DNA from: Macrostomum lignano
Taxonomy: Eukaryota
Direction: 5' to 3'
DNA length: 54,517 nt
Assembly (NCBI GenBank): GCA_002269645.1
Contig: NIVC01004216.1
Span: 1 to 54,517 of the forward strand
Positions 1 through 35,300 of this stretch are shown here, piece after piece. The notes under the pieces are model-generated. The model was not told the DNA's origin and did not search any database. It worked only from the letters and a program-made list of their open reading frames with translations. Position numbers and translations under genes: made by a program. How positions within the stretch are numbered: the stretch's first letter is position 1; each line of letters begins with the position of its first letter.

Positions 1-1036
1 AATAACTCAGCAACTGAGCAGCCCAATAACTCAGAATCTGAGCAGCCCACTCAGCAGCACAGCATCTCAGCTCAGCTCACGTGCTGCACTCCCGTCGCCG
101 TCAAGATCTTCAGAAGACTTGCTGAAGTCCTGCAGTGACTGGGCGAAGACGTCTCTCTGCAGTGCTGCGGGAAGGCTGGCCGGCACTGACAACTGCAGCC
201 GATGAAGACGCGGCAGATCCCGCCGATTGTCCAGGTGCAGAATGTGCAGCAAGTTCTCCTGTGCTGCTGTTGCGTGGGTTCACAGGGAGATGAGTTGACA
301 TTTATTATGCTTTCTCGCATGTACAGCTCAGCATGACAGCACTTACAGCTTGTGATGCAGCGCAGAAGCTGGCTGAATGCGTCTTCGATTGGCAATTGGC
401 CGACAACCTGCAGCAATTCGGACCAACTGCTGGCCGATTCATGGTAATGCCTTGAGTGGGATGAGCTGCATTGGGTGGAAATTCGATCAGGAGCAGACAT
501 TGCTGAGTAACGATAATTATTGTCAATTTCAAGAAATTTATCGATTAGATGAATTACACTTTTTACAGGTTTTCAAAGTTTAGTATTGAGGCACTCACCA
601 TTTTTAATATGATTTTCGTACACAGCCACAATATTGCCAATGTCAATTAGTCCTTCAATGTCGTCTTTAAATATATGGAAAAGAAGGCTAATAAGTCCTT
701 CGAGTTCAACGCTTTCTTCGCCACCGTCCATGGTTGATTGATATTATTTGTTGATAGGCTCAGCCGCTTTTTAGCTTATTTTTAATTAAAAACTAATTGA
801 TTAGTCCACTTGTCCGTTGTCCACTTGTCTTGCATTAACTAACTTAGTAATGCAAAGCAATGCAGTTGCAGTGACAGAGCTGCCTCTATTTTATCACGAC
901 AGGACAGAGCGAAACCGAAAACTGGAAAAGGGAAAGATTTCTTGGAAATTCCAAGCGCCCGCGCGAAGGGTTTAGCCGCCCGTTCTAAAAATAGATTTTA
1001 TTAGGATATAACCAATGTACACTGAGAGTCTACGTT
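1..1036. repeat. Left arm of a large inverted repeat (pairs with ~5710-6730)
   Basis: Visual alignment: 1-1035 is the reverse complement of ~5710-6730 with scattered substitutions and small indels. Homology ends at gtctacgt (1028-1035), the reverse complement of acgtagac (5710-5717). Confidence 0.95.
81..731 (-). CDS. 5' part (exons 1-3, CARD-like region) of an inverted RLR paralog; the gene continues off the left edge
   Basis: Reverse-complement copy of 6005-6657. Exons are 731-599 (ATG; MDGGEESVELEGLISLLFHIFKDDIEGLIDIGNIV...; gtgagt donor), 502-347 (156 nt; gtaagt donor) and 266-81 (gtgagc donor). Phases 1/1/1 give one open frame. It is followed by the same intronic minisatellite seen at 6660 onward. 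Confidence 0.75.
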
Positions 1037-1554
1037 CATCCCGCAAGCTAAATGTACATTTCATTGCGTACAAGAGTGAATTTGAGGTCTCTGCCCTTTT
1101 TCATTTCAAATCTTATTTTTTTGCTCTGGTTCTTTCTATACACACATTAAAGCAGCCTTGCAATAATTTCATTTCCATTTCTGCTTGTGCTTTCCTATCA
1201 AAGTGCTGTGTTACTCTACTCTGTCTATTGTCCTTCCTGACTCCGAGTAAATTATGTTCAGTAGTTTCATGCATGATTTTTGTGTTTGTTTTAGATAACA
1301 ACAAGCTGTTGAAACCCGCGGATTTTGAACCCGGGGAATTTCAATCCCTGGAACTATTTTGCATGTACTCGTATTCTAAAATCTGAGGTCAAACTCAAAC
1401 AAAAACTTGTTAATAGTTAGGTTTGAATTAAACATAAAATAGAGTACATTCGTGAAAAATTAGGATTTGAGGCAAACATTTATATTGTTGGCTGGGGTGC
1501 TGCGAACAGGCAAACTCTGGCCTCTGCCTCTCCTTATGTCCCTTGGATCCTTAG

Positions 1555-2055
1555 AAACTTCGATCTTCTCTTCTGTTTCCTCTCCTCTCTCTCGTCTCTG
1601 TCTCTTCTCTCTCTCCTCTATCCCCTATTCTCTCGTCTATTCCCTCTCCCTTCTATTCTTTTATCCCTCCTCTCCTCCCTCCTCTCTACTCTCTCCTCTC
1701 TCTCCTCTCATCTCTTCTCTTCTTTCCTCTCTCCTCTCTACTCTCTTCTATCGTCTCTTCCCTCACCTCTCTTCTCTCTCGTCTTTGCTCTCTTATCTAT
1801 CTCTTCTTTTATCTTTTCTCTCTTCTCTCTTCTCATTCTTTCTGCATGTTCTCTCCTCTCTCTTTCACTCTCTCTCTCCCTCTCTCTCCTCTCATCTCTC
1901 TGCTCTCTCCTGTACCATCTCTCTTTCTCCTCTAATCTCTCCCCTGTTTCCTCTCCTCTCTCGTCCTTTCTCCTCTTTCCCCTGTCCTCTCGGTTCTCTC
2001 CCCTCCCCTCCTCTCTCCTCTTCTTCCCTTTACTCTATCATCTCTCCTTTCTCCT

Positions 2056-2102
<47 letters not shown>

Positions 2103-2425
2103 TCTTATCTCCTCTCTTCTCACTCCTCTCTACCTCTCTCTCCCCTCCTATCTCCTCTCTGTTCTCTCTTCTCTTCTCACTCTTCTCTACTCTCCTCTCT
2201 CATCGATCCTCTGTCTCATCTCTCCCCTCTTCTCTCTTCCTCTTCTCTCCTCTACTCTTTCCTCTCCCTCCTGTCTCCCCTCCTCTCGCTTCCTCCTCCC
2301 ATATTCTCTGCTCTCTCCTCGTCCTCACCCCACTCGTCTCTCCTGTTATCTTATATCTTTTCTCTTACCCCCTCTCGCCCTTCCTCTCTTTCTAATAGTC
2401 TATTCCTTTTCTTTTTCACTCTCAT
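1555..2425. repeat. CT-rich low-complexity/microsatellite tract, probably a degenerate relative of the hAT MITE at 5069-5709
   Basis: Almost pure C/T on the + strand, including a (CT)n run near 2060-2098. It is preceded by caaactctggcc (similar to caaactccggcc at 5078) and followed by ctcatctggcccgcagccatgagct, nearly identical to 5640-5663. Confidence 0.8.
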
Positions 2426-3049
2426 CTGGCCCGCAGCCATGAGCTGGATTATTTATCTGGCCTTTGAGTTAAAAATCTACCGATCCTGCTTCGAAAGCCA
2501 GTTTGTGGGACGTAGTACTATCATGGTTGTTATCATTTCCCATGCTTTAATCACGTCATCTTTCTGGTCAATTAGCAGCGCTGAGAGAAATTTGTATATC
2601 TCCAGCTCCACCACCACAGTCTGCAGCAGTCAAACAACCATGGAAATACGCATTTCTTAGGAGGCCATTTAAATTTTAAAGTACCTTATACCTTAAAGTT
2701 TTAACCATCCCACATCGCCTTGATTTGCCATCCTTGTTTAACTGCTGCAGACTTGTCTATTCAGAGGAAAGGAAAGTGGTTTAAAATTGAATCTCTCGCT
2801 AAACTCTCTCCTCTCCACGCCTCTCCACTCGCGGGGTACAGAGAAGGCTATTAAAAAGTTATTCCAAAACACTGTACATTCGCAATGTACATTGAGCCCT
2901 ATCGCCTGACCCTTCGTCTGAGCTGGGGGAATGAGTGAGTGAGCGGCACAAACAACAGAAAAAGCAGACAAACTTCACATGCTTACAGTTTCTTTTTCGG
3001 TTGAGTTACAGAGTTGAAACTTTACATTTAGATAGAGAATGGGTTAATG

Positions 3050-3583
3050 AAGAATTGTGTCAGGTTTGAAGTCAATCGCTTTACGTGGAGCAAACTTATG
3101 GCAGCTGAAAGTTAGTCAATTTTGAAACCCATTTTGCACATCTGGGCCCAGATCAGGATCGGGAAAGAGAGGCAGGCGGGCGGAGGTTGGGGTGGTTGCT
3201 ACGCTGAAAAAAAACAGCCTAACTTTAAAAGTGCACAGCACCGCTCAGGATTAACTTTGAGACTCGAAATTTTACATGATCGTGCCAAAATAGTTTAAGA
3301 TTATCTGTGTCAAATTTGAAGAGAATCGGTAGAAGTAGAGCGGCGCTATGGAGGATTAAGTGAAAAAATCGCGCATTTTGAGCAGTTTTTTGTACTTTTA
3401 GGTAGGAAGACTTGAGTCTAGGAAATTTAAAGGTAGCCTAAGACATTCTCCGTAGTAAGTTTAGGGTGGGTGTAAAGTTTGGTGTAATTTGGTTGAGCGG
3501 TTTGGGAGTCCATAGCGAAGTAATTTGTCCACAGACAGACAGACAGACAGACAGACAGAGTTTTGATTTTTATAGGTAGAGAT
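3050..3583 (+). mobile_element. Helitron/Helentron-like non-autonomous element (DINE-1/Lep1-like) with an (ACAG)n microsatellite
   Basis: Contains caaatttgaagagaatcgg, then gtaaagtttggtgtaatttggttgagcggtttgggag, then (acag)n at 3531-3558, ending in ttttataggtagagat. This layout is typical of invertebrate DINE-1/Lep1-like elements. The 5' boundary is approximate. Confidence 0.55.
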
Positions 3584-3744
3584 CAATAAGCGCAATGGCA
3601 CTTAAACTCTAGAATTTATTTGTTAGTAACGAATTCACCGATTGTAATCAAGTTACATGACTTATGACTATGAGTATCTAGTCGTGGAACAGTCAGCTAC
3701 TTTAGGGTGTAGAAACTGGTTGATGTAGGTGCCGGTCCTCCTCT

Positions 3745-4210
3745 CTCCCTACCCTACCTCTCCCTTGACTCCCTACCTCCCTACCTCACTCCATACCTCT
3801 CTCCTACCTACCTCTATCTCTCTCCCTACCTCTCTCCCTACATCTCTCCCTACCTCTCTTCCTAAATCTCTCCCTACCTCTCTCTATCTCTCTTCCTACC
3901 TCTCTCCCTACATCTCTCCCTTACCTCTCTCCTGACCCCCTACCTCTCTTCCTATCTCTCTCCCTACATCTCTCCCTACCTCTCTATCTCTCTCCCGACC
4001 TCTCTCCCTACATCTTTCCCTTCCTACCTCTCCCTACCTCTCTCTACCTCTCTCTATCTTTCTCCCTACATCTCTCCCTACCTCTCTACCTCTCTCTATA
4101 TTTCTCCCTACATCTCTCCCTACATCTCTACCTCTCTCCCTAGCTCTCCCTACCTCTCTCTATCTCTACTTCCCGACATCTCTCCCTACATCTCTCCCGA
4201 CATCTCTCCT
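3745..4210. repeat. Pyrimidine-rich minisatellite built on ctctccctac(a/c)t
   Basis: Degenerate tandem units read directly from the sequence. Confidence 0.9.
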
Positions 4211-5068
4211 AATTGTGTAAACTAATTGTATAAGAACCTGATCAATTTTAATGAAATAGCAAGTATTGCTGTAAGTGTTGAAAAATGGGAACTTTTCCAA
4301 GGAAACTTGGGTATTTTTTAAGAAAGTAGACAAATTTTATCTATCACCGACATGCATTTTAATAGAGAAGTACAACAACTTAGTAAGAACTGGTGAAATG
4401 TACGATTTGGAGAGAAAAATTGGCCGATATGTATCACATGGGCGTCGCCACAGGGGAGACAGAGGGGACATAATCCCCCAGTAGAAGCTAAGGGGGCATG
4501 TCAAATACTTTGTCCCCCCCCCATACGCCATTTCACCTTGTAACTTGCTATGGAAACCAATAATTTTGCTTCAGGGCGCCAAAATATAGCGGCTTCAGCG
4601 CCAAAATGAGTGCCAATCAACACCGATGTTTAGCATAACGTATGAAACCATAGTAGTCTACTTACAGTAGAGATAAGAAATTGGCGTTTTAATCGCAAGA
4701 TTCTGTTTCACTTATACTTCACAAACACCCAGGGATTAAAATTCAATAATATTTCAGCATTTTACACTTAGTAATGCAATTACAATTTAACACCGAGCCC
4801 ACGAAATGTTGGCAGCTTGTCCAAAATGGTGAACAGTTGGCTGGTCTGGTCACCAGAGATTTCTTTTTTAAATGAAAAATCATTTAAAAGCTGTGATTTC
4901 CAACACGGCAGATACATGTAAATTTTATACAAGTTTGGCTGGACACTTTTTGGGGGATTCGGAAAATTTGCAAAACCCTAAACAACCCAAAAATCCTTTC
5001 CCGAACTCCGATCCCGATCCCAAATCCCAACCCCGAAACCTAACCACTCCTAGTGAACGTACGTAGAC

Positions 5069-5709
5069 CGGGGGTCAGCAAACTCCGGCCCGAGGGTCAC
5101 ATGCGGCCCGGCCCGCAATGCCTCCCTATCCGGCCCTCGGGTCCATGCACACTTTAAAATGGCATCCGGCCCGCTCAAGGTTTGTGTCTTCTCAGTTGTC
5201 TCTTCTCTTCTCTTCCCCTTTCTTTCCTCTCAGTTTCTCTCCTCTTCTCTCCTCTACTCTCTCCTCTACTCTCTCCTCTTCTCTCTCCTCTTCTCTCCTC
5301 TACTCTCTCCTCTACTCTCTCCTCTTCTCTCCTCTACTCTCTCCTCTTCTCTCTCCTCTTCTCTCCTCTACTCTCTCCTCTACTCTCCTCTTCTCTCCTC
5401 TACTCTCCTCTTCTCTCCTCTACTCTCTCCTCTACTCTCCACTTCTCTCATCTACTCTCTCCTCTTCTCTTCTCTTCTCTCCTCTCCTCTCATCTCCTCT
5501 TCTCTCCCCTCTCATCTAATCTCCTTTCTCACTAATCTCTTCTCTCATAGCATCTCTCATCTCGCTTCTTACCTCTCCTCTCTCCTGTCATCTCTCATCT
5601 CCTCTTACTTCTCTCTCGCCAATCCCTCTCCTCTCCACTCTCATCTGGCCCACAGCCATGAGCTAGATTCTTTACCTGACCCCCGAGGTAAAAAGTTTGC
5701 TGACCCCTG
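5069..5709. mobile_element. Non-autonomous hAT-superfamily DNA transposon (MITE) with a CT-rich interior
   Basis: 16-bp TIRs cgggggtcagcaaact (5069-5084) and agtttgctgacccctg (5694-5709), with one mismatch. Perfect 8-bp direct repeat acgtagac at 5061-5068 and 5710-5717. An 8-bp TSD and CAGGGG-type termini are hAT hallmarks. Confidence 0.9.
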
Positions 5710-6730
5710 ACGTAGACGCTCAGTGTACATTGGTATGTAGAATCTATTTTTAGAACTGGTGGCCATACCCTCCGCGCGCGCTCGGAATTTCCAAGAAATC
5801 TTTCCCTTTTCCAGTTTTCGGTTTCGCTCTGTCCTGTCGTGATAAAATAGAGGCAGCTCTGTCACTGCAACTGCATTGCTTTGCATTACTAAGTTAGTTA
5901 ATGCAAGACAAGTGGACAACGGACAAGTGGACTAATCAATTAGTTTTTAATTAAAAATAAGCTAAAAAGCGGCTAAGCCTATCAACAAATAATATCAATC
6001 AACCATGGACGGTGGCGAAGAAAGCGTTGAACTCGAAGGACTTATTAGCCTTCTTTTCCAAATATTTAAAGACGATATTGAAGGACTAATTGACATTGGC
6101 AATATTGTGGCTGTGTACGAAAATCATATTAAAAATGGTGAGTGCCTCAATACTAAACTTTGAAAACCTGTAAAAAGAGTAATTCATCTAATCGATAAAT
6201 TTCTTGAAATTTGACAATAATTATCGTTACTCAGCAATGTCTGCTCCTGATCGAATTTCCACCCAATGCAGCTCATCCCACTCAAGGCATTTTCATGAAT
6301 CGGCCCAGCAGTTGGTCCGAATTGCTGCAGGCTGTCAGCCAATTGCCAATAGAAGACGCATTCAGCCAGCTTCTGCGCTGCATCACAAGCTGTAAGTGCT
6401 GTCATGCTGAGCTGTACATGCGAGAAAGCATAATAAATGTCAACTCATCTCCCTGTGAACCCACGCAACAGCCACACAGGAGAACTTGCTGCACCATCTG
6501 CACCTGGACAATCGGCGGGATCTGCCGCGTCTTCATCGGCTGCAGTTGTCAGTGCCGGCCAGCCTTCCCGCAGCACTGCAGAGAGACGTCTTCGCCCAGT
6601 CACTGCAGGACTTCAGCAAGTCTTCTGAAGATCTTGACGGCGACGGGAGTGCAGCACGTGAGCTGAGCTGAGATGCTGTGCTGCTGAGTGGGCTGCTCAG
6701 ATTCTGAGTTATTGGGCTGCTCAGTTGCTG
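5710..6730. repeat. Right arm of the large inverted repeat (promoter and exons 1-3 of the RLR gene)
   Basis: Reverse complement of 1-1035. Confidence 0.95.
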
Positions 6731-9700
6731 AGTTATTGGGGCTGCTCAGTTGCTGAGTTATTGGGGCTGCTTAGTTGCTGAGTTATTGGGGCTGCTTAGT
6801 TGCTGAGTTATTGGGCTGCTCAGATGCTGAGTTATTGGGCTGATCAGTTGCTGAGTTATTGGTCTGCTCAGTTGCTGAGTTATTGGGCTGATCAGTTGCT
6901 GAGTTATTGGGCTGATCAGTTGCTGAGTTATTGGTCTGCTCAGTTGCTGAGTTATTGGGGCTGCTCAGTTGCTGAGTTATTGGGGCTGCTCAGTTGCTGA
7001 GTTATTGGGCTGCTCAGTAGCTGAGTTATTGGGGCTGCTCAGTTGCTGATTTATTGGGCTGCTCAGTTGCTGAGTTATTGGGCTGCTCAGTTGCTGGGTT
7101 ATTGGGCTGCTCAGTTGCTGAGTTATTGGGCTCCTCAGTTGCTGAGTTATTGGGCTGCTCAGTTGCTGAGTTGTTGGGGCTGCTCAGTTGCTGAGTTGTT
7201 GGGCTGCTCAGTTGCTGAGTTATTGGGCTGCTCAGTTGCTGAGTTATTGGGCTGCTCAGATTCTGAGTTATTAGGCTGCTCAGTTGCTGAGTTATTGGGC
7301 TGCTCAGTTGCTGAGTTGTTGGGGCTGCTCAGTTGCTGAGTTATTGGGCTGCTCAGTTGCTGAGTTGTTGGGGCTGCTCAGATTCTGAGTTATTGGGCTG
7401 CTCAGATTCTGAGGTATTGGGGCTGCTCAGTTGCTGAGTTATTGGGGCTGCTCAGTTGCTGAGTTATTGGGCTGCTCAGATTCTGAGTTATTAGGCTGCT
7501 CAGTTGCTGAGTTATTGGGCTGCTCAGTTGCTGAGTTGTTGGGGCTGCTCAGTTGCTGAGTTATTGGGCTGCTCAGTTGCTGAGTTGTTGGGGCTGCTCA
7601 GATTCTGAGTTATTGGGCTGCTCAGATTCTGAGGTATTGGGGCTGCTCAGTTGCTGAGTTATTGGGGCTGCTCAGTTGCTGAGTTATTGGGCTACTCAGT
7701 TGTCAGAAGACTCGCAGACTCGCTGAGGTATTAGAATGCTCAGATGCAGATTTGCTGAATTGTTGAGCTTCTGTGACTGAGTTGCTATCCTTTGTTTGTC
7801 TTTCTGATTCCTGTCACCTGATCCCGTCACATGGTCATGGTGACATGACCCCATCTCCAGATCCCTTACCAGATCTCCCCTTATCGCCTCAACCCACAGA
7901 TGTTCATTGCGTTCTTCACCAGCTTATCAATTGCGCACCTCACGACTGGTTTGAGCACCTCATTCTCGCTGCGATCGCTGACCTCGAGAGCTCAGTCGAT
8001 CTGCTCGACACTATTGCACCGTTCGGCCAAGACTTTGAGTCAGGTGAGAGACCAGATCATTGCATCCGAAATAGCCGGTCAAATCACTGAACAAAAGCAG
8101 CGGAAGACACGCCTTTGCCCAAAATGGGTACTCTAAAATGATCACTTTCATTTTAAATGCATTGCCACCCCTTCATCTCAGAGCTCCCGGCGCTTCAGCC
8201 TAAGCTCTACAACACGGTGTCGAGTCCGGAGTTCAAGGAGGCCAAAAAGTCGGTCGTCGACCAATCGAACCGGTGGTTCGATCTCAACGGACTGAAGTTC
8301 GACTCTGACACTTACAAGCTCGAGCGGGTAGCCAATCAGCAGCCTCCATCGGCGTCTGGGTCTCAGCCGTCTGGCAACAACGAGCTCGTCGGCGGGCAGC
8401 TCCGCGACTACCAGTTGGAGTTGGCAGAGCCGGCCCTGTTAGATCGCAACTCGATAGTGATCGCGCCCACTGGCTCTGGGAAGACTCTGGTAGCCGTTCA
8501 TGTCACTCTGCAGCTGCTCAAGGCCGAGCCCCAAGCGAAGGTCAGTGCTGAAAGCAATAAATTTATCATACCACACAACATAATGGCAGTGGGAATAAAA
8601 TGGAGACAGCGGAGTTCACAATTGCCGTCAGCGCTGGTTTACAAGACGATGTCGCCGAATGCTTTGCGCCAGTGCGCCAAGTGCCATGTTTCATGTTAAA
8701 TGTTTGAACATTTGCCCCATTTTCAAACACCATAATATCTTAGGTGGCACTTCTGGCATCCACTAATCAGCTGGTTCAGCAGCAATACGACAAGTTCAGG
8801 TCCGCCCTGCCCTCACCTTGGCGGGACAGAGTTGACCTAATCCTGGGAGGCAAAGACAACAAGAATCGAAAGCCATTCGCCCTGTCTATGAAGAAAAACT
8901 CCATCGTGGTCATTAGCACCCAAATTCTATTAAACGAGCTTGATAGAAAAACAGTTGCGAACATTTCCGATTTCCGCCTCATCATATTCGACGAATGCCA
9001 CAATTGTGCAAAGAGCCACGCCAGTATGAAAGTGATGATGCACTACCTGCGACTGAAGAGAGATCTGGAACAAGAGAATCAATCGGAAAGCTGTCGAGAA
9101 ACCCGCCTGCCACAGATTCTTGGGCTAACGGCCAGTCCAGGTAAAATGCTAGAAAGGCATGAATTATTAAATTCTTGTTTTTAAGCTATTTCACGTCTAA
9201 CGATGCCTGATCTGTTCATTGTGTCTGATCTGTAAGGACACTCAATGTCCATTGTGTCTGATCTGTAAGAACACAACTGTCCATTGTGTCTGATCTGTAA
9301 GAACACAACTGTCCATTGTGTCTGATCTGTAAGGACACTCAATGTCCATTGTATCTGATCTGTAAGGACACTCAATGTCCATTGTGTCTAATCTGTAAGG
9401 ACACTCAATGTCCATTGTGTCTGATCTGTAGGGACACTCAATGTCCATTGTGTCTGATCTGTAAGAACACTACTGCCCATTGTGTCTGATCTGTAAGGAC
9501 ACTCAATGTCCATTGTATCTGATCTGTAAGGACACTCAATGTCCATTGTGTCTGATCTGTAAGGACACTCAATGTCCATTGTATCTGATCTGTAAGGACA
9601 CTCAATGTCCATTGTGTCTGATCTGTAAGGACACTCAATGTCCATTGTGTCTGATCTGTAAGGACACTCAATGTCCATTGTGTCTGATCTGTAAGGACAC

Positions 9701-12700
9701 TCAATGTCCATTGTGTCTAATCTGTAAGGACACTACTGCCCATTGTGTCTGATCTGTAAGGACACTACTGCCCATTGTGTCTGATCTGTAAGGACACTCA
9801 ATGTCCATTGTGTCTGATTTGTAAGGACACTCAATGTCCATTGTGTCTGATCTGTAAGGACACTCAATGTCCATTGTGTCTGATCTGTAAGGACACTCAA
9901 TGTCCATTGTGTCTAATCTGTAAGGACACTACTGCCCATTGTGTCTGATCTGTAAGGACACTACTGCCCATTGTGTCTGATCTGTAAGGACACTCAATGT
10001 CCATTGTATCTGATCTGTAAGGACACTCAATGTCCATTGTGTCTAATCTGTAAGGACACTCAATGTCCATTGTGTCTGATCTGTAAGGACACTCAATGTC
10101 CATTGTGTCTAATCTGTAAGGACACTCAATGTCCATTGTGTCTGATCTGTAGGGACACTACTGTCCATTGTGTCTGATCTGTTAGGACACTCAATGTCCA
10201 TTGTGTCTGATCTGTAAGGACGCTACTGCCAGTGGACAAAAACGCCAATTAAACACCCAAAACATCCAAACGTCCAAAAAACCTGCACCTCAAGGCACCG
10301 GCAAAGCCAAGGGACCAGAGGATGCCAAGGAGCATCTTGTTCAACTGTGCGCCAATCTTGACTGCCCCTACCCTGTCACTGTGCAGCGCTATCTTCAGTC
10401 ACTATTTAAATTTAACTCAGATCAAGACTGTCAAATCCTCTCGGTACCTGCTAAACAGAGCTCGGAAGACGTATTCATTAAATTTTTAAACGAGCTGATG
10501 GACCTTGGGGAGAAGCTGCTATATAGCAATCGGAGCTCGCTGCTAAACTCAGAGCCGGAAGCCCTCCAGATTGCATCAGCGCCGCCAAGAGGCACTCCAA
10601 CTTACACAAACTACTGCTCCGATGTTAAGTACAAAATTCACCAAGTGGCAGACGAAGAGATGGGCAAAGATCTGTTCGCCTGCAGTCGTTATCTGGACAC
10701 ATTCAATCAAGCGTATATGATTGCGCAGTTCTACAATCCCCGAGGTGCGTGGCGCTACATCAAGAAAGAACTTCGAGCTGTGGACGAACTGGCTAAGTCC
10801 CCAGTCTGCGAGGCGGAGAGTCAACTGCGGCAGCGACTGCATAGCCTGATCGGGCCGCTAGAAAGATTCTGCGACACCAAAGAGGCTTCGGTAAGTTTGT
10901 TATTGAGTGCATTTAGCCAAATGCAACGTTCCATTATTTTGATGACTGGTTTATCGCTTGCAGTCGAGTCCTCCGCTGGACAAATTCGTGGAAATCCTTC
11001 GCAACCAGTTCAACTCGCAAGCCGACTCGCGAGCGATTGTTTTCGTACAACGGAAAATCTACGCTCAGGTGATTACTGAGTTCTTAAACGAGCAACTACC
11101 GCATCTACCGGCTGCCTATGTGACTGGCGCAACTTCAAGCGACGCTTCCGGAGGCACTAATGCTTCTGAGCAGCAGGCTCGCATTGAGGGCTTCCGGCAA
11201 GGCGACTACAAAGTGATTGCTTGCACCAGTATGGCGGAAGAAGGCCTAGACATACCGGACTGCAACCTGGTGGTGCGCTACTGTCACGTGACAAACGAAA
11301 TCGCCATGGTGCAGACCAAAGGCCGGTGCCGGGCCAAAAACAGCGCCTATTACGTGATTGTAGCTGAGACACAGGAGGCGCTGCGTCACAAGGAACGCGA
11401 AAATGAGCTGCGCGATGCAATGATGCAGCAATCAGTGGCGTGCGTTACTGATTTAACGACTGAAGAGTTGGTAGTCAAGGTGAGAATCTTTCAGTTTTTT
11501 TGTCGACAGTTTCAATCGCTGTGTTGACTTAAGGACAACTTTGTTTTTCTCTGTGCTGTGCCTCTTCGAGGGTTATAGCCAGGGACTACTATAACATCGA
11601 GATGGGAAACTAGGCAAATCATGGCAAAGTTTTTACGAGGCTGGTTTGCGAGGTTTACGAGGATCTTTGAGTAGTCCCTGGTTTTATAGCCTAGTGAGAG
11701 GGTTTTAGCTTAGTGTTTAGAGTGTCGGACTCATGACTAGAAGGTCGGGTTTTCGATTCTCTACCCACTCGGAACAATTCTTGGAAAAGATACTTCACTC
11801 TAATTTTTTTTCAGTTCACCCAGCTGTAAGATAGGTGCCAGCATTAGCTGGGGTAATTGAGGGTGTGTGGCGATCTCCCAGTCCTTTGACTGAACAGCCG
11901 TACGCAGCCTTCAGATGCGCCGCGCAATAGCTGCGGCTGAGCTGTCGGTTGTACATCTGCTCATTAGGGCAGGTGTAATCAATTATAGACAATTAAAGTT
12001 ATGAATTCTCTTCTCTGATTCTCTTCTTTACGAGTACTTGAGGTTCGGTTCTTGTGCATTATTAATGTTGGGTGTGGCCATAGACGATTCAGTTGCACAC
12101 ACACCCATGCAGCCATGAGCTAAAGAAGCAATGCTTCAAGCTGGGAAAATATACTTTTTTGCGATTGAATTCGTCCAAACTGCAAAACCTTTCGTCCACA
12201 AATGCTTTTTTAATGGGAGCTAAATTTAGATCATACCATAGACAACTGTGTTCACGCAAAAAGGTTCATCCAGTTTGTAAAACATTTCGTCCCCTAGACT
12301 AGAGACGGAGTGTACTGTTCCTACCATAGTTAACACCCAATTGACTGTTCGCTTTTGCTACCACTACAGCTACAGCAACGCATATCTTCCATTCTGAACC
12401 CGGCAAAACAGTCGAAGATGAACCGAGGCCCCTACCATCCAGTGTCAAACGAAGACCGCAGGCGATTAGCCTTGGCTGTTGAAGAAGGCCGCGATTGGAA
12501 ACAACTGGCCGATATCCTTGGGATCAAGAGAAAGACAGCCAAAACTTAGGCTGTCTGACAGGCTTTGTTCAATATCTCGTGATATCAAATAAAGTCGCTC
12601 CGTTTAGCTGTTAGCTGTTTGGACGAAGGGTTTAGACGAAATGTTTTACAAACTGGATGAACCGTTTTGCGTGAACACAGTTGTCTATGGTATAATCTTA

Positions 12701-14149
12701 ATTTAGCTCCCATTAAGAAAGCGTTAGTGGACGAAAGGTTTTGCAGTTTGGACGAATTCAATCGCAAAAAAGTATATAAAAGATATATAAAAGAAGGTTA
12801 CGATAACATGAAATAAGACGCTCGGTTAAGAGAGTAAATACTTAAGAGGTCTTGGCTCACTGTCTTCCGCTAGAGAAGATGTCATAACAATTAAATTTGT
12901 TAAAATTCTTTTAGCCTTCTATAAGCTTTATACGCTACTGCTATAAGCTTTCAATTGCAGATGCTGGATTACCAGGAAAAGGCGCTGAAAGACGAAGAGG
13001 AAAAACGTGCTAATAATAGCACACCTATCGGAAGTGACGTCATCATTGATAGCGACCACGAAATTCTGTGCTGCAAGTGTAAAGAAAAACTGTCGGATTC
13101 GACTCGACTTCGATTGATTTGCGGAATCCATCGCGTCGTCCTGGATGCCGACATGTTTACTGGAGGCCAACGCATTGTTGGTCAACATGGAGGCGAGATC
13201 AAAAAGGTTCCCGGAATGGATATGATTGGTGTGGATTTGCTGTGCGGCTACTGCAGCTACGGACCTGTGGCTAAAATTGCTCGCTACAAAGGCCAATTTT
13301 TCCCTTTGTTGGACCCGGAATGCGTCTGTTTTCGCCGATTGAATGACAAGGTAAGACTTCTATAGTTGGTATTGAAATTCTGTTCATTTAGAACGCAAAT
13401 GAAATAAAATATGTAAATACTGAGCCTGTAAGAACATGTACGGTCATGTCAAGGCTTACGGGGAGAATTGCTGAGATGTCAAGGCTGATGGGGAGAATTG
13501 CTGAGATGTCAAGGCTTACGGGGAGAATTGCTGAGATGTCAAGGCTTACGGGGAGAATTGCTGAGATGTCAAGGCTTACGGGGAGAATTGCTGAGATGTC
13601 AAGGCTTACGGGGAGAATTGCTGAGATGTCAAGGCTTACGGGGAGAATTGCTGAGATGTCAAGGCTTACGGGGAGAATTGCTGAGATGTCAAGGATGAGA
13701 GGTCAGAAGCTACATGTGGTTTATTCAAAAAATGATTCTATTTTTTGTTGCCTTTTTAAAGGGGGCGCTGATTGCTAGCAGTCACTATCGGCCCTAAAAG
13801 ACGGCCTCAGCATTTCAATAATTTACCCCCATATGAGCCTTGACATCCGAGCAATCCCCCATAAGCTATTGACATCTCAGCAATGAAACAATGCAGCAGT
13901 GAAAGTGTAAAAGCCTAACGAATTACCTCGGAAGGAATCGATCATGGCCGGAAGATAATGGATCGCAACACCTTTCCTCATTTACTTTAGAAATTGGAAA
14001 AACAGGTGAGAAAGTGGAAACATACAAAATCCTTCCTTCGCGATGTTGCTGAGCTGAGCAGTGACGATAGAGACTACTGGCGTCGGGCAGTTCCGCGTCT
14101 GCCCAGACAGTACCGAGCTGCGGCAGTTCGAGGCGGAGCGCATCGTTAA
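6005..14149 (+). CDS. RIG-I/MDA5-like receptor (RLR): tandem CARD-like regions, DExD/H (DECH) helicase, C-terminal Zn-binding regulatory domain; 10 exons
   Basis: Exons: 6005-6137, 6235(or 6272)-6391, 6472-6657, 7900-8043, 8182-8540, 8744-9140, 10295-10890, 10964-11479, 12961-13350 and 13991-14149 (TAA). All have GT-AG ends, and phases match from exon 3 onward. Motifs: Q motif LRDYQLE, motif I APTGSGKT, motif II IIFDECH, motif III GLTASPG, EHLVQLCANLD, motif IV AIVFVQRK, motif V TSMAEEGLDIPDCN, motif VI VQTKGRCR, CTD ILCCKC and LLCGYC, terminal VRKWKH. The CARD-like segments are LISLLFQIFKDDIEGLIDIGNIV and LHQLINCAPHDWFEHLILAAI. The exon 2 acceptor is ambiguous (see findings). Confidence 0.9.
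6660..7702. repeat. 24-25 bp minisatellite (gctgctcagttgctgagttattgg) in RLR intron 3
   Basis: About 40 tandem units. Each contains the dyad CTCAG-ttg-CTGAG. Confidence 0.97.
9215..10222. repeat. 33-bp minisatellite (ccattgtgtctgatctgtaaggacactcaatgt) in RLR intron 6
   Basis: About 30 tandem units. It explains the 11-aa periodic ORFs (MDIECPYRSDT, CLICKDTQCPL). Confidence 0.97.
11575..11688. mobile_element. Short MITE-like element
   Basis: Inverted termini tatagccagggactact and agtagtccctggttttata. Confidence 0.5.
11700..11908 (+). mobile_element. tRNA-derived SINE (copy 1)
   Basis: A-box-like tagcttagtgtt, a tRNA-like loop actcatga and B-box-like ttcgattc. The body ttcacccagctgtaa...gccagcattagctggggtaattgagggtgtgtggcga matches the reverse complement of 43748-43949. 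Confidence 0.8.
12152..12774 (+). mobile_element. Tc1/mariner-superfamily internal-deletion derivative with long TIRs and a transposase N-terminal remnant
   Basis: About 140-bp inverted repeats (12152-~12292 and ~12636-12774) starting tacttttttgcgattgaattcgtccaaactgc, flanked by TA on both sides. The interior encodes an HTH-like stub MNRGPYHPVSNEDRRRLALAVEEGRDWKQLADILGIKRKTAKT*. Confidence 0.75.
13445..13695. repeat. 30-bp minisatellite (atgtcaaggcttacggggagaattgctgag) in RLR intron 9
   Basis: About 8 near-identical units, plus about 2 degenerate inverted units at 13836-13883. Confidence 0.95.
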
Positions 14150-15517: not shown

Positions 15518-18500
15518 TCAAACTCGCCTCATCAGAAACGGCTCCCTGGCAGCAGACGTCAGCCCGTGGCATCGCTGATCTTGCTCGGGTGACAGCTCCA
15601 CTACAGACAGCCGCTTCATCAGTCTGCTGCTGGTTACCAGGCTCTGCTTCATACTGGCCAGAATTGCTTTTAGGTGTCTACGAAAAGTGGCCTGACTGAT
15701 GAATTGAACAATGGGCCGAGCTGACAGCCAGGTCAGCAGCAGCAGATAGACTACAGAATCTACGGTGAAGAACAGATCCTGAAATCGATTGGTTGGTGAT
15801 TGTTTAGAATCCAAACATTTACTGTAAGATCTGCTGGTTCGACAACTGGGGGAGCCGGTATGAAGAGGCGATAGGAAAGATACTGCGAGAGACAGGAGAG
15901 ACGACAGGGGAGAACATGTAGGCAACTGGAGAGAACAGGGAGATAGGAAGTAAGTGTAGTCCAATAGAAAATGTTGACGCGTTCTCGATATTGAATGCGA
16001 ATATGCGAATGGGAGTGGATCCCTGGTTCAACTGCCGCGGTCACATTCGTTTGGACTTTTGTACACGAGAATTTGCCGGTTTGAATCGTTTTTGTGCGAT
16101 TCAAAACCCATGAAGACCAAACCGCAAGGCACAAGTAGTGTACATGCATAACTATAAGAAATTTGAAAAAAGGTACAGTATGGGAGCGCTTGTGTGTTCT
16201 CAGGAGTCTGCGGAATGGCCAGAATCATCTCAGCGCTGGTTGTGAAAACGATGTCGATGAAGTCGTTGCGCCAGAGTTCCCCACAGCTGTTTTTATTTTT
16301 ATACTACACAGAATCGAATATAGGATGCATCTTTGGTGCCACCCTCCCCCCCCCCACCACAAACCTGTCTGTTCTTCCTATCCAGAAAGCTCGCATGCGA
16401 CTGCGTGCCCAGCAGGGAGCGCAGGCTCTGCGGCACGAAGATGTGCTCCTGCATCATGTGGCTGGCGCTGCTCACAAACTTAGTAAAGGTAAAAATCGAC
16501 GTAGGTGCGTTGAACAGCAGCTCGAGACCGACGGTGATCAGACTGGCTCGGCGAATCTCGACGAAGGCGTCGACATCGATTAACACGACTTGGCCGATGC
16601 TCTCTGGCTGCAGCCACTGGAGCTGCCCAGTTCGGCACAGCTGCAGCAGCCTCAGGCCGCACAGAACCGGCACAACCATTGGCAGAAAGTCGCCAATCAT
16701 CAGATCAATCAGTGGCCAGATCACCGCTTTGTACCGAATCTCAACCCACTTGTCGGAGAAGCCACAGTGGTAGCCTCGGTTGGTTTCGCCCGGATTGTCC
16801 AGCCGGGTCAGGGAGAAAGTCCACAGGAACTGGCAGTTCAAGCTCATCAGTATGGCGCAGAACAGGACGAAGCAGTTGAAAACTCGCTCCCGGTTGTACT
16901 TGGGATAGAACTTGTCCAGCCGCTGGTACAGCAGCAGAGTGTCGATGGCGATCGCCAGGAAGCACAGCTGCCTCATGTGCGCAGCCAGGCTGTACACCAT
17001 CGGGTAGACTTGACAGCAGGTCTCGCAAGCGAACAGCAGCATGAAGTTGACGTCCACCCGGGCAACCGAGCGGAGCCAGAGATCGCCTGCGCTGATCAGG
17101 ATTAGCACCGAGTCCAGGCCGGCCACAGCGCTAGAGAAGTAGCACAGCGGTAGGAAATTGCGACCCATCCTGGTGAGCGTGGCCGCGGCCAACAAATTGC
17201 CCGCTCCTCCTAGAAGAAGAAAAACCGGCAGCAAGAAAGCGATGACCTGACGCCACTTGTCCGGCAGGTCTGGTCGGCCTCGGTAGACGGTGCACTCTGG
17301 CAGCAGCTGACGCTCTTCGCCAGCCGGATGCGCCTCCGACTCGGTGTCCGGGTCGTGCGGCGGCGTCAGTTCTGGCCGGACCGTCTGCGGCATGTTGACA
17401 GTTCCGTTGCCTAGCAACGAGTTGAAGAATTTCCGCTGCAGATCGCCGGATCCTTTCTGAACGTCGATCGCTCCGTAGCCTTCGGAGACTGTTGAAGATA
17501 AAAATCAAGTTGAAGACGTTGAAGTAGTTTTTTTCGATGCACTATAATATTTCAAGCGTCTTGAAATGATGCTTAAGATAGGAAAAAAGGCACACCTGAA
17601 ATAGCAGTAATTCCCTATCACTATCTTGAATAAATATATCATAAGTAATGGTATATTTCACTGGGCTTGGGCTGTGTAAACTCGGAATTTATAGTGTGCA
17701 CAATCCGGGTCTCTTGGCAGATATCTTGTAAACAATATAGATATACGATATCTTTCTCTATAATCCAATCCATCTGTGTAGGCTTGACGAACAGGAACTG
17801 TTCCTTCAAGATTTATGAGCCTATAGAATCATTAAGGCACAAAAATATGGAATGCATAAGTATATGACTAAGAATTCCAGAAGGATTATAATTCTTACGA
17901 CAAAGAGTTCACTTAAGTAGTATAGTAATCTTCGGTTGCTCAATATTTGGCGTCTTTCAATCGCAATGTTCTGTTGCACAACAGTGGCATCTGATCTATA
18001 GTCTATGGCAGTCTTCTGTTGCACAAAATTCGGTATTGTCTATGGCCTACATGGTAATCTTCTGTAGAACAACATGTGGAATTGTCTATGGTCTATGGTC
18101 CTATGGTAATTGTCTGTTGTAGAACATGTTGCATTGTCTATGGTCTATGGTAATTGTCTGTTGTAGAACATCGAACATGTGGCATTATCTATGGTCTATG
18201 GTAAATTGTCTGTTGAACAACATGTGGCATTGTCTATGGTCTAATGTAATTGCCGTTGAACAACATTGGCAATTGACTATTGTGGCAATAGACTATTGTC
18301 TATAGTCGATGGTAATTTTAGGTTGTTTAGCATGTAGCATTGTCTATAGCGGCCTATGGCAATCTACCATTGTTTATATTAGATATCACTTGTCATGACA
18401 TGACCAGATAGCCAGCAATAAAAGTCCAACAGGAAATCTTACAGTCCATATTCTCGAAGAAATCGGCGCCCAGTCCAAGTTTCTTGAGATTTTCTTCAAC

Positions 18501-32300: not shown

Positions 32301-35300
32301 ACCAATTGCCGAAATCAGATTAATAATGATCAATCGGCCTTTGAAATGATCGCCAACCACCGATGCGAGAATGTAGGTGACGCACTCGGCCAGAGAGAGG
32401 ATGGTGACCGCCCACTTCGACTGCGACAGTGCGATGTTCTTGCGCTTCATGTAGTAGGCCTGGGAGTTTATAGATAATCAATATCAGTGCACGAAATCCC
32501 AAAAATGGTGTTTACATTGTTGGCAATTTGACAGGCAAGATTGAAGTCGCCAGATTGTAGAGTTTGATTGTAGGCATTCTACATCGAATGCTTATCAGCT
32601 CTATAAAAACTTGTCAAGAAACTTTCAAAAAGTGAACAGATTTTTCGGTTATATTCTGTCTTTAGATAGGCTCGTATTGGCATTCAAACGAATCGTCGTC
32701 CTTTAGTGTCGCGTTCAAATCATGTCACAAAAAAACAGCCGAACACTCACCAAATTGACGAACGGCATGTAAAACCCGATGAAGGACATCATGTTGCCAA
32801 GCAGCCACGGGCCGATCTCTGGTCGAACCATGCACTGCTTAGGATTGCAACAGGAGCCCATGCGCCGTTTGAAATCCCCATAGTCTATGGGATCGTTGGT
32901 GTCCGTCTCCAGTCGGGAGAGAAACGGCAGACAGCAGGGCAGGCCGACGATCAAGATTAGACAGCCGGTGACGCGAAAGGCCACTTCGACGCCGTAAAAA
33001 TCTACGAGCCACCCGTTGATGGGGTTGAAGAGCAGACTTCCTGCGGTTCGGGTGTAGGCTCTAGCGAGTTATAAGGATCGGAGCGGTTCTCAGTGCCTTC
33101 ACTGAGTAAACGGTGCCTAAAACATGCAGGCACTGCTCAATGTGGTGATGACACTCTATACCAAACACTGCTCAATGTGGTGATGACTCTCTATACCAGA
33201 CACTGCTCAATGTGGTGATGATTCTCTATACCAGACACTGCTCAATGTGGTGATGACACTCTATACCAAACACTGCTCAATGTGGTGATGACTCTCTATA
33301 CCAGACACTGCTCAATGTGGTGATGACTCTCTACTCCAGACACTGCTCAATGTGGTGATGACTCTCTACTCCAGACACTGCTCAATGTGGTGATGACTCT
33401 CTACTCCAGACACTGCTCAATGTGGTGATAACTCTCTACACCAGACACTGCTCAATGTGGTGATGACTCTCTACTCCAGACACTGCTCAATGTGGTAATG
33501 ACTCTCTACACCAGACACTGCTCAGTGTGGTAATGACTCTCTACTCCAGACACTGCTCAATGTGGTAATGACTCTCTACTCCAGACACTGCTCAATGTGG
33601 TGATAACTCTCTACACCAGACACTGCTCAATGTGGTGATGACTCTCTACTCCAGACACTGCTCAATGTGGTGATAACTCTCTACACCAGACACTGCTCAA
33701 TGTGGTGATGACTCTCTACTCCAGACACTGCTCAATGTGGTAATGACTCTCTACACCAGACACTGCTCAATGTGGTGATGACTCTCTACTCCAGACACTG
33801 CTCAATGTGGTAATGACTCTCTACACCAGACACTGCTCAATGTGGTAATGACTCTCTACTCCAGACACTGCTCAATGTGGTAATGACTCTCTACACCAGA
33901 CACTGCTCAATGTGGTGATGACTCTCTACTCCAGACACTGCTCAATGTGGTGATGACTCTCTACTCCAGGCACTGCTCAATGTGGTGATGACTCTCTACT
34001 CCAGACACTGCTCAGTGTGGTGATGACTCTCTACTCCAGGCACTGCTCAATGTGGTGATGACTCTCTACTCCAGACACCGCTCAGTGTGGTGATGACTCT
34101 CTACTCCAGACACTGCTCAATGTAGTGATGACTCTTTACTCCAGACACTGCTCAATGCTGTGATGTTTATCTACCCTGATTATCTGATGTTTATCTAGGT
34201 TTTACTACCATGACTTAGTATCCACCACCCAGGAGGAAACTGGAGGACTTTATCCATCGGCACAATGTGATAACCGGTAAAACCCAGACGCTGGGGTTGT
34301 AAATTTTAATTCTCTATATCTGATTAGCATGAATTATGGCTCCTGCAATCCAATCCTCTTTCGATCCCGAGCATGTCTCTCTCGCCCGAATGTCTCAGAT
34401 CAGAGAGTCCTTCCTGTAATCCCTCAAGCTCGGTTCCGCGAAATCTCCATACAGATTGATTGAGCACAATCGAGACTGCCATCATAATCTGTTTTAGGGC
34501 GCATCCCGCCTCCCGTGACCTGCGGCATTTCCCGAGTCGCTGTCACCAGGAAATCTCCGATGACTTGACTGCACTTAGAGACGCACTTAGCTGGCACAGT
34601 AATTATCTTCCTGCAGCGGTGGGTCAACTGCCAAATAAGATAAAATCTGCTCACTCGTTACTTAATCCATTTCCCCTGGTAAACTTTCTTAAAACTTCCT
34701 CGACCTCCGAACCAGCAATTCCATCCATTTTGAGTTGCCAACGAAACAGAATGAAAACTGCCTCCCATACCATAAAGATCATCAAGCTCCAGATTTTTCA
34801 GGCCAAAAAAACAAGCGAAGGTCGTTTCTGGTCGCTAATGAATTAGTCCATATAGATGCTAATGGAGAGCGGCGGTGCAAATAGAGCAGGCGGGTCAGGA
34901 GGGCCACTGCCCAGCTGCTGAATAATTTACATCAACATCGACACATCATCAATCCAGCGCGGAGGTGTCAAGAGAGACTGGCGGAGACTGTGGTCGACAC
35001 TCAGATACAAAAGATGACATTAAACAAGCATAAATATGCTTCAAGGTCATTTGATGAGTCTGCTTGGGACGCCTCTATTAAAGAAACATATAGTGCAATG
35101 TAATGTGCTGATCATTCCCTGCTCTTGTTTTCTTTGGCCTCCCGTCATTAAAGCATATTAATAGACAGAACTCTAATGCGATCTTTAAGGGCTTCTTAGA
35201 TGGATGATGGAATGAATATTTTGCCGTTTCATTAGTCTGCCATTAATTAAATTATCATTTGGTGCGTTTTCTGCACCATGGGCGCTAGCACCAGGGGCTT

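Follow-up and report, generated by a model that had tools for sequence, protein, structure and literature searches.

Is the inverted repeat that opens this piece of the Macrostomum lignano genome a young head-to-head duplication of a RIG-I-like receptor (RLR) gene, or do two old genes share only their 5' ends? The window, that is the whole stretch analysed, is an entire contig of 54.5 kb, and the record holds nothing to the left of position 1. When the window was compared with itself by blastn, 1-1035 aligned on the opposite strand to 6737-5710 (96.8% identity over 1037 columns, 22 mismatches, five gap openings, E = 0). A repeat search gave gapless arm blocks of 433, 98 and 439 nt, each 97-99% identical. 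In each arm, exons 1-3 are preceded by ~295 bp of sequence upstream of the ATG, and the two gene copies point away from each other:

1-1035, - strand: left arm, 5' end of the Mlig016200 copy, ending at the contig edge
732-1035: upstream sequence of the left copy, ~300 bp
731-599, 465-347 and 263-81, - strand: exons 1, 2 and 3 of the left copy
1-49: remnant of the left copy's intron-3 minisatellite; the contig breaks in this array
1036-5709, no strand: spacer, unique and non-palindromic, 4674 bp
5710-6737, + strand: right arm as visible in the window, upstream region and exons 1-3 of Mlig021912g1

The initial annotation had placed reverse complements at 1-1035 and 5710-6730, head-to-head across a ~4.7-kb spacer and with duplicated promoters. 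The repeat, the arrangement and the measured spacer bear this out, and the proximal upstream region is present once in each arm; only the right end needs correction, to 6737. The right arm stops there only because the contig begins within the minisatellite of intron 3 in the left copy. On NIVC01004410.1 and NIVC01000679.1, contigs of the other subgenomes that are collinear with window 1-11602, this divergent pair is present again, both genes being full-length. On both of these sister contigs the full arms measure 2.3-2.8 kb and stop ~17 nt past exon 5, equivalent to window position ~8557. Their spacers are homologous to that of the window and in the same orientation, although L001 lacks window 1301-3581. 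The spacer is non-palindromic: its three CT-rich low-complexity blocks (1567-2320, 3769-4212 and 5200-5620) all sit on the + strand.

The right-hand gene is complete in the window:

6005-14149, + strand: BOX15_Mlig021912g1 (PAA48174.1, 999 aa), RLR gene of 10 exons
6005-6137, 6272-6391, 6472-6657, 7900-8043 and 8182-8540, + strand: exons 1-5
8744-9140, 10295-10890, 10964-11479, 12961-13350 and 13991-14149, + strand: exons 6-10
6689-7702, no strand: intron-3 minisatellite, 24/25-nt unit TGGGCTGCTCAGTTGCTGAGTTAT, ~42 copies

The minisatellite is common to both arms, but its array size varies among copies, with intron 3 ranging from 600 to 1242 nt. The SF2 DExD/H helicase core carries motifs I (GxGKT), II (DECH) and VI (QxxGRxxR), found in the product as APTGSGKT (exon 5), DECH (exon 6) and QTKGRCRA (exon 8), and a CxxC...CxxC C-terminal domain (CTD) is encoded in exon 9. 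Pfam matched DEAD, RIG-I_C, Helicase_C and RIG-I_C-RD in both partner proteins, P0001 falling below the cut-off for two of them. DEAD and Helicase_C scored 5e-22 and 3e-18 on P0001 and similarly on P0002. RIG-I_C (PF18119, Hel2i/pincer) gave 27.1 bits for P0002 and 22.7 for P0001, just under the cut-off of 23.2; the CTD family (PF11648) gave 39.3 and 24.4 bits respectively (cut-off 25.6). The four zinc-binding cysteine columns of the CTD are invariant in 10 of 10 RLRs, both partners included; phmmer with the CTD on its own matched no PDB chain. The initial description of a dsRNA-sensor gene is well founded, since LGP2, MDA5 and RIG-I structures were the best phmmer hits (E = 3e-66), in alignments continuous across aa 278-892, and database matches were named DHX58 and IFIH1. 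E-values of 1e-66 to 1e-55 for LGP2, MDA5 and RIG-I, against 1e-25 or weaker for Dicer, indicate at the sequence level that both partners are genuine RLRs, closer to these than to the Dicer/FANCM helicases.

The N-terminus is a different matter. Exons 1-3 had been called CARD-like; the arms do hold the upstream region and these exons, but neither Pfam, phmmer, HHalign nor Foldseek detected a CARD, or a domain of any other kind, within the first 248 aa. No Pfam family matched aa 1-261 at E ≤ 1. An exhaustive phmmer search of the N-terminal ~250 aa against 1.84 billion representatives returned nothing beyond the query's own cluster, apart from one spurious repeat hit, so that this module has no relatives in that search beyond the Mlig021912/Mlig016200 pair. 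HHalign against 20 MDA5 CARD pairs gave a probability of 5.5%, compared with 52% for a Ciona control. Single-sequence AlphaFold2 models contained helices only, six of them within aa 8-110, at pLDDT values of 40 and 45 that make them unreliable, and Foldseek of these low-confidence models against the PDB gave nothing below E = 5. The module is predicted to be lineage-specific and helical. Like RIG-I/DDX58, MDA5/IFIH1, LGP2/DHX58 and DRH-1, both partners combine a DECH-box SF2 helicase with the Hel2i/pincer and a zinc-binding CTD; they differ from the CARD-bearing RLRs in a ~250-aa N-terminus in which no CARD, death domain or DED is detectable. DRH-1 of C. elegans has cryptic CARDs able to elude sequence searches (PMC11260149).

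Comparison of the paralogs along their length reveals a sharp step. In exons 6-10 they are saturated, with dS of 1.58-1.74 and 57% amino-acid identity; copies of the same gene across subgenomes differ there by a dS of only 0.011-0.027. Inside the repeat the paralogs are as close to each other as copies of one gene: exons 1-3 have a dS of 0.01-0.07 between them, exons 4-5 one of 0.017-0.149. Introns 1-3 (94-100% identical) and the upstream region match the exons in similarity, and the paralog introns beyond the repeat are unalignable. At the upstream edge (~5737) identity rises from 33-50% to 92-100%, and past 8540 it falls from ~93% to 55-64%. Paralog-diagnostic biallelic sites follow the same boundaries: 129 of 139 in exon 6, none of 101 in 7750-8540 and two of 36 in 5737-6697. 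The homogenised tract is bounded as follows:

5737-8557, + strand: full homogenised tract in the right gene; proximal upstream region (~270 bp before the ATG), exons 1-5 and introns 1-4
5737-~6700: young zone, 96-100% identical between paralogs
7750-8540: patchwork zone, 84-96% in the g1 and g3 loci, 97-100% in g2

The protein segment encoded by its exons runs from the N-terminal module through a linker into Hel1, of which it takes in the first ~50 residues with motif I. The intron-3 minisatellite separates the two zones. At 31 sites in the patchwork zone (7759-8228), Mlig021912g2 sides with Mlig016200 against its own orthologs, and its dS is 0.017 to its cis partner versus 0.09-0.12 to those orthologs. 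The distal edge of the tract also varies between copies (sites 5757-5783). Exons 4-5 contain private sites in g1 (n = 33) and g3 (n = 20) that interleave every few bases, a poor fit to simple conversion tracts.

These data are very probably explained by an old divergent RLR pair whose 5' inverted repeat has been kept near-identical by repeated gene conversion between the arms. The helicase and CTD bodies (most of Hel1, Hel2i, Hel2, the pincer and the zinc-binding CTD) would have separated long ago, and intrachromosomal exchange between the arms would have homogenised the ~2.8-kb repeat. The tract stops abruptly at both points where the paralogs cease to be homologous, the boundary of the spacer on one side and the unalignable intron 5 on the other, and the length-variable minisatellite would split it into two zones with distinct conversion histories. 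As judged from the grouping of sites among the copies, at least one conversion is shown to postdate the split of the three subgenomes. The locus is a neat but unexceptional instance of concerted evolution, neither a young duplication nor a demonstrated source of dsRNA.

A young inverted duplication of the whole gene, leaving copies that are recent paralogs throughout, was the initial interpretation. It fits the part visible in the window, where 1-1035 and 5710-6737 are 97-99% identical in their aligned blocks. However, the left gene continues as Mlig016200 on both sister contigs, and the saturation of exons 6-10 together with the unalignable introns makes a recent origin of the pair very improbable; only the 5' 2.8 kb are homogenised. 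Even less credible is the idea that strong purifying selection, confined to the N-terminal module and acting without conversion, keeps the 5' parts alike. A module common to two sensors might well be constrained, but selection at the protein level cannot explain the tract because introns 1-3 and the upstream region, like the synonymous sites, are as similar as the coding sites; moreover, dN inside the tract exceeds that of exons 6-10. A false palindrome at the contig end, created by mis-joined haplotypes or homeologs or by a fold-back read, also deserves mention: the left arm meets the contig end within the minisatellite, a contig from the same region (L005) resembles a fold-back, and chimeric scaffolds are known in this assembly (PMC10733133). 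Against it, the assembly recovered this arrangement three times over, from sequences 2-3% apart that also differ by kilobase indels. The left arm and spacer are collinear over 5.7 kb with L002 (10741-5108, 97.3% identity), where they run into a different gene, full-length Mlig016200g3. Variants of Mlig016200 type mark the outer edge of the left arm, among them a 7-nt insertion missing from the right arm, and a fold-back would be expected to give outward-identical arms and no unique 4.7-kb spacer. With three collinear contigs and a different left gene, a haplotype mis-join is ruled out as far as the assemblies allow, and we regard an artefact of any of these kinds as highly implausible. The helicase and CTD exons in question for the left copy are present in full on both sister contigs; the present record ends inside its intron 3.

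An alternative to repeated conversion is one recent inverted copying of the 5' 2.8 kb of one paralog over the other, with no later exchange. The arm divergence from promoter to exon 3 (~2%) is close to that between subgenomes (PMC10733133), and one event just before the genome duplication could produce it. We nevertheless find this improbable. The exon 4-5 zone is more alike in the g2 locus than in g1 and g3, Mlig021912g2 is shifted toward Mlig016200 at 31 sites and the distal tract edge differs by copy; there were therefore at least two events, one of them after the subgenome split. The assembly has been published as representing three subgenomes, and three locus copies differing by ~2% are consistent with that structure (PMC10733133). 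Because all three compared loci come from this one assembly, which relies on a single set of PacBio data, with multi-mapping Illumina reads used for polishing (PMC5730564), and in which chimeric scaffolds reportedly make up 36% of the length (PMC10733133), fine-scale mosaics between copies could be partly an assembly artefact. A hairpin-RNA locus, in which both arms lie on one transcript whose dsRNA yields siRNAs or is sensed by the RLRs themselves and so brings about autoregulation, would be compatible with conversion. A single RNA carrying both arms, which are 1 kb long here, 2.3-2.8 kb when complete and 92-99% identical, would fold into a long stem. The read-through across the spacer that had been suggested is at odds with the gene order: because the genes are divergent, 3' read-through of either heads outward and leaves the spacer behind. 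Upstream antisense from either promoter would cover ~130-160 nt of an arm, which is promoter and not mRNA, and a stem matching the mRNA requires a start inside one gene followed by antisense transcription through its promoter. In annotation tables restricted to protein-coding genes, the spacer has no called gene or transcript on any of the three contigs. We consider such a locus quite unlikely; antisense transcription through one arm, giving a hairpin that would feed RNAi or the sensors, is a more remote variant.

Recurrent arm-to-arm gene conversion is familiar from the palindromes of the primate Y and X chromosomes and from the divergent Drosophila Hsp70Aa/Ab genes. As in those systems, inverted arms surround a unique spacer, exchange has recurred across copies, and arm identity lies far above that of the flanks, equally in coding and non-coding sequence. 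The M. lignano arms differ in being short (~2.8 kb), 92-99% identical and confined to the 5' third of the genes, which leaves two chimeric genes with a common head and diverged bodies rather than two identical genes. The plant NLR sensor/helper pairs RGA4/RGA5 and RRS1/RPS4 are arranged head-to-head, share a single short promoter that works in both directions and show no homogenisation. The M. lignano pair resembles them as divergent, related innate-immune receptor genes, which suggests co-regulation; here, however, each gene has its own promoter copy, the two lying 3-5 kb apart and matched by conversion. Clustered RLR paralogs swap or gain N-terminal modules independently of the body, with seams at exon-intron boundaries, and such grafting has been deduced from the deep phylogeny of the genes or from gains and losses of exons (PMC8998645, PMC4565553, PMC2686710). 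These reports describe neither Macrostomum nor gene conversion, and the exchange at the present locus differs in being recent, in including the promoter and in occurring by conversion between inverted neighbours.

The outcome of repeated conversion would be two different RNA-binding bodies under a common proximal promoter and a common N-terminal, presumably signalling, head. The two sensors would thus share both their regulation and the downstream partner they feed. The current view of RLR evolution, in which signalling modules were repeatedly grafted at the N-terminus of a conserved helicase/CTD body, comes from deep phylogenies. The pair would then provide a recent RLR case in which promoter and N-terminal module are swapped by conversion between genes with saturated bodies, independently in three subgenomes of a neopolyploid. 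Whether the repeat is itself selected and not a neutral by-product, conversion keeping one promoter and one signalling head (possibly a cryptic death-fold) on two sensors, is more doubtful, and we offer it as a tentative idea; if true, domain grafting would be caught live, with two sensors co-evolving with one downstream adaptor. As transgenesis is possible in M. lignano, the locus offers a concrete gene pair with which to study the role of a non-CARD RLR head. Reads, probes or dsRNA directed against exons 1-5 cannot separate the two sensors; only exons 6-10 are paralog-specific.

Exon 2 of the left copy is 119 nt long owing to a 1-nt frameshifting deletion (GG versus GGG at ~432-433). No other copy shares this deletion (alignment column 615), which may be real or a homopolymer error. 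The shared upstream region contains a cluster of motifs:

5784-5850, + strand: motif cluster
5784-5792, + strand: GGAATTTCC, left-arm mirror 944-952
5813-5825, + strand: AGTTTTCGGTTTC, left-arm mirror 911-922
5841-5850, + strand: GATAAAATAG, left-arm mirror 886-895

We take AGTTTTCGGTTTC to be ISRE/IRF-E-like and GATAAAATAG to be TATA-like, and regard the cluster as a lead to candidate regulatory sites.

Six-frame translation placed helicase motifs I (APTGSGKT), II (DECH) and VI (QTKGRCRA) and a Cys-rich C-terminus on the plus strand between 8.2 and 13.4 kb. The spliced model matches the structures of LGP2, MDA5 and RIG-I (E = 3e-66 to 1e-55, residues 278-892), and Pfam assigns DEAD, RIG-I_C (the RLR pincer domain), Helicase_C and RIG-I C-terminal domains to it. 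The C-terminal domain (CTD) alone gave no match when used as a phmmer query against the PDB; its cysteines were then examined by alignment, in which the four zinc-binding residues are conserved. These results bear out the RLR identity proposed in the initial annotation. In the protein database the product is BOX15_Mlig021912g1 of Macrostomum lignano (PAA48174.1, 999 aa), and mapping this annotated protein back onto the window gives ten exons, from 6005 to 14149. It replaced our own nine-exon model, the annotated one having an acceptor at 7900 and an extra last exon. No publication turned up in a literature search for the gene identifiers.

Exons 1-3 had also been read as CARD-like, and this we could not substantiate. 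Pfam gave no family for the N-terminal 248-261 aa, even at a threshold of E <= 1. phmmer, run exhaustively over 1.84 billion cluster representatives, returned only the protein's own cluster and one spurious outside match, P0130, rejected as a low-complexity repeat match. When the module was compared by HHalign with 20 aligned vertebrate MDA5 CARD pairs, the probability was 5.5% (52% for a Ciona RLR as positive control), and comparison with the N-termini of other flatworm RLRs revealed no resemblance. Two AlphaFold2 runs produced all-helical models with six helices in residues 8-110; they are unreliable (pLDDT 40 and 45), and a Foldseek search of the PDB with them found nothing. By these searches the N-terminal module is an orphan, possibly with a cryptic death fold such as that reported for C. 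elegans DRH-1 (PMC11260149). Lophotrochozoan RLRs carry diverse grafted N-terminal domains (PMC8998645).

Aligned with itself, the window pairs 1-1035 with 6737-5710 on opposite strands at 96.8% over 1037 columns (22 mismatches, five gap openings); a repeat search resolves the core into three gapless blocks of 97-99%. The minus strand of the left arm carries an ATG at 731 and, mirroring the right copy, three exons whose splice sites are canonical GT/AG, so the coordinates first proposed for the inverted duplication, with exons 1-3 mirrored in its arms, were essentially correct. The spacer (1036-5709, 4674 bp) is non-palindromic: each of the three low-complexity, CT-rich blocks within it is on the plus strand. 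No copy of it was found elsewhere within the window, and for this reason we name no transposon. The window shares a 2.3-kb part of the spacer (1301-3581, with the first of the CT-rich blocks) with L002, the record from contig NIVC01000679.1; L001, the record from NIVC01004410.1, lacks this part. A 72-nt direct repeat (2404-2475 and 5623-5694, 81%) comes after two CT-rich blocks and suggests an internal duplication or a repeat-element fragment.

The second-best database match is Mlig016200g2 (P0002), 67% identical overall with a nearly identical N-terminus. NIVC01004410.1 and NIVC01000679.1 each carry a Mlig016200 copy head-to-head with a Mlig021912 copy, with gaps of 3.7 and 5.6 kb respectively between the called genes and ∼ 3.1 and 5.0 kb between the arms. 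Window positions 1-11602 are entirely collinear with both sister loci, the spacer having the same orientation, and 1-5646 aligns with L002 10741-5108 at 97.3%. Variants at the outer edge of the left arm are of Mlig016200 type, among them a 7-nt insertion missing from the right arm. Collinearity and edge variants together identify the left arm as the 5′ end of the Mlig016200 copy belonging to this subgenome, the contig stopping in the intron-3 minisatellite. The initial annotation had sought sequence to the left to see whether the left copy is complete; the window is itself a complete contig of assembly GCA_002269645.1, and it is on the sister contigs that both genes are seen as full-length ten-exon RLRs. 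Three locus copies at ∼ 2% divergence match the published finding that the assembly holds three homeologous subgenomes, whose SNP divergence is 2.2% overall and 1.1% within coding regions (PMC10733133). Canu produced the assembly from PacBio reads, and Pilon polished it (PMC5730564). As the source of the head-to-head arrangement a mis-join or fold-back is very unlikely, given that diverged sequences were assembled into it three times, that a unique spacer separates the arms, and that the arms run on into two different genes. So far as assembled sequence can show, the duplication therefore stands against a mis-joining of haplotypes by the assembler.

Exon 2 of the left copy has a 1-nt deletion at window 432-433 (GG, as against GGG in the other five arms) that shifts the frame and is private to the window contig; it may reflect pseudogenisation or, alternatively, an error of the PacBio-based assembly in a homopolymer. 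P0126 (Mlig006916g1) was considered as the left gene's missing remainder and rejected, being part of a large fold-back in the interior of another contig and having no join with the window contig. The record concerned (L005, NIVC01001153.1, 14799-37422) contains a near-perfect palindrome (1-8718 versus 21264-12662, 98.1-99.7%). At its centre only exons 7-10 of a Mlig016200 copy are present, which the annotation names Mlig006916g1 (484 aa), and RRM_1 and RNase_P_p30 genes stand in its arms in mirror image. With NIVC01004410.1 the sequence shares 99.2-99.4% identity, and the palindrome is either a product of chimeric assembly or a real fold-back duplication whose breakpoint lies in intron 6.

Divergence was estimated by the Nei-Gojobori method from a codon alignment of the five complete genes. 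In exons 6-10 the paralogs differ by a dS of 1.58-1.74 with 57% amino acid identity, as against dS 0.011-0.027 between copies of the same gene. Paralog dS is 0.017-0.149 in exons 4-5 and 0.01-0.07 in exons 1-3, the latter the same as between same-gene copies (0.02-0.05). Identity between the paralogs, taken per exon, falls from 96-99% in exons 1-3 to 90-95% in exons 4-5 and 71-77% in exons 6-10. In 100-nt windows it jumps from 33-50% to 92-100% at ∼ 5737 and drops from ∼ 93% to 55-64% directly past exon 5 (8540). On the sister contigs the inverted repeat spans 2.3-2.8 kb, past which only a 475-bp helicase stretch aligns (73.7%). Between the paralogs, introns 1-3 and the upstream region match as closely as the exons do, which rules out protein-level selection as the source of the 5′ likeness. 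On sequence evidence, then, the RLR pair is old, with only its front end homogenised; the initial annotation had taken the 5′ likeness for that of a young paralog pair.

Individual sites point to recurrent gene conversion. In exon 6, 129 of 139 biallelic sites split the three Mlig021912 copies (g1 in the window, g2 and g3) from the two Mlig016200 copies. None of the 101 sites in 7750-8540 does so, and in 5737-6697 only two of 36 are paralog-separating, both at the extreme edge. Mlig021912g2 has the Mlig016200 state, unlike its own orthologs, at 31 sites (7759-8228), and its exons 4-5 show a dS of 0.017 to the cis partner versus 0.09-0.12 to g1 and g3. The distal edge of the shared tract also varies among copies (sites 5757-5783). 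Taken together, these observations place at least one conversion after the separation of the subgenomes. Among the copies intron 3 ranges from 600 to 1242 nt, and its minisatellite divides a uniformly young zone from a patchwork zone; we infer that the length heterogeneity of this array limits conversion tract extension, and the array may be a conversion initiation site. The gene contains three minisatellites:

6689-7702, intron 3: 24/25-nt unit, ∼ 42 copies, each unit with a short palindrome CTCAG...CTGAG
9213-10221, intron 6: 33-nt unit, ∼ 31 copies
13446-13694, intron 9: 30-nt unit, ∼ 8 copies

Exons 4-5 (7750-8540 and the matching parts of records L003 and L004) hold 33 g1-private and 20 g3-private sites, interleaved every few bases, a pattern that simple conversion tracts explain poorly. 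Among the three Mlig021912 copies these exons have dS 0.09-0.18 and dN 0.04-0.06, with dS about ten times lower (0.011-0.019) in exons 6-10. Unsampled donors, mis-polishing or fast evolution are possible sources of the excess. Amino acid differences between the arms were at one point considered paralog-specific, a reading dropped because they are private to the window's right copy in the six-arm alignment. Their recurrence in protein P0123 from the older assembly shows them to be real.

The most likely reading is that of two sensors with different RNA-binding bodies that share a proximal promoter and an N-terminal head, both kept alike by conversion inside the 2.8-kb inverted repeat. The comparisons document the structure of the locus and the evolutionary mechanism; co-regulation and shared downstream signalling of the two sensors are what we would infer. 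Here a process already described, interparalog gene conversion in an inverted repeat, acts on a known gene family; the value of the locus lies in being a recent case of RLR-to-RLR N-terminal module exchange.

The suggestion that read-through across the spacer yields a dsRNA stem matching the sensor mRNA is, judged from the geometry, unlikely. Transcription of the two genes diverges, so read-through past the 3′ end of either heads away from the spacer. Upstream antisense transcription, whichever promoter it came from, would take in just ∼ 130-160 nt of arm, all promoter sequence. In the two sense mRNAs the common sequence has the same orientation, and the molecules do not pair. An mRNA-matching stem requires a start inside one gene and antisense transcription across its own promoter and the spacer.

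Three motifs lie within ∼ 70 bp, 155-221 bp upstream of the ATG, in the upstream region common to both arms:

within 5784-5850, mirrored within 886-952: GGAATTTCC, kB-like 9-mer, found only at these two places in the window
within 5784-5850, mirrored within 886-952: AGTTTTCGGTTTC, ISRE/IRF-E-like
within 5784-5850, mirrored within 886-952: GATAAAATAG, TATA-like box

The ISRE/IRF-E-like pattern GAAANNGAAAMY has six matches in the window versus 0.87 expected. The 10-mer kB pattern GGRWWTTYCC has no match in the arms, where the site is the 9-mer. The three motifs presumably resemble immune-gene promoter elements and are offered as a lead only.

Further features of the contig are as follows:

16302-17504, minus strand: 401-aa ORF, no Pfam match
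32718-37341, minus strand: exon-like fragments of an MFS transporter
42823-44879, plus strand: exon-like fragments of a sulfotransferase (Sulfotransfer_5, weak)
48105-50081, plus strand: 659-aa ORF, no Pfam match

Intron 8 of the right gene measures 1481 nt in the window and just 84 nt in Mlig016200. A short ORF within it (12334-12546, plus strand) has a weak homeodomain-like HTH match (HTH_23, E = 0.003) and is probably a transposase remnant. A 220-nt inverted match (75%) between 11696-11911, in the same intron, and 43745-43953 is probably a dispersed repeat.
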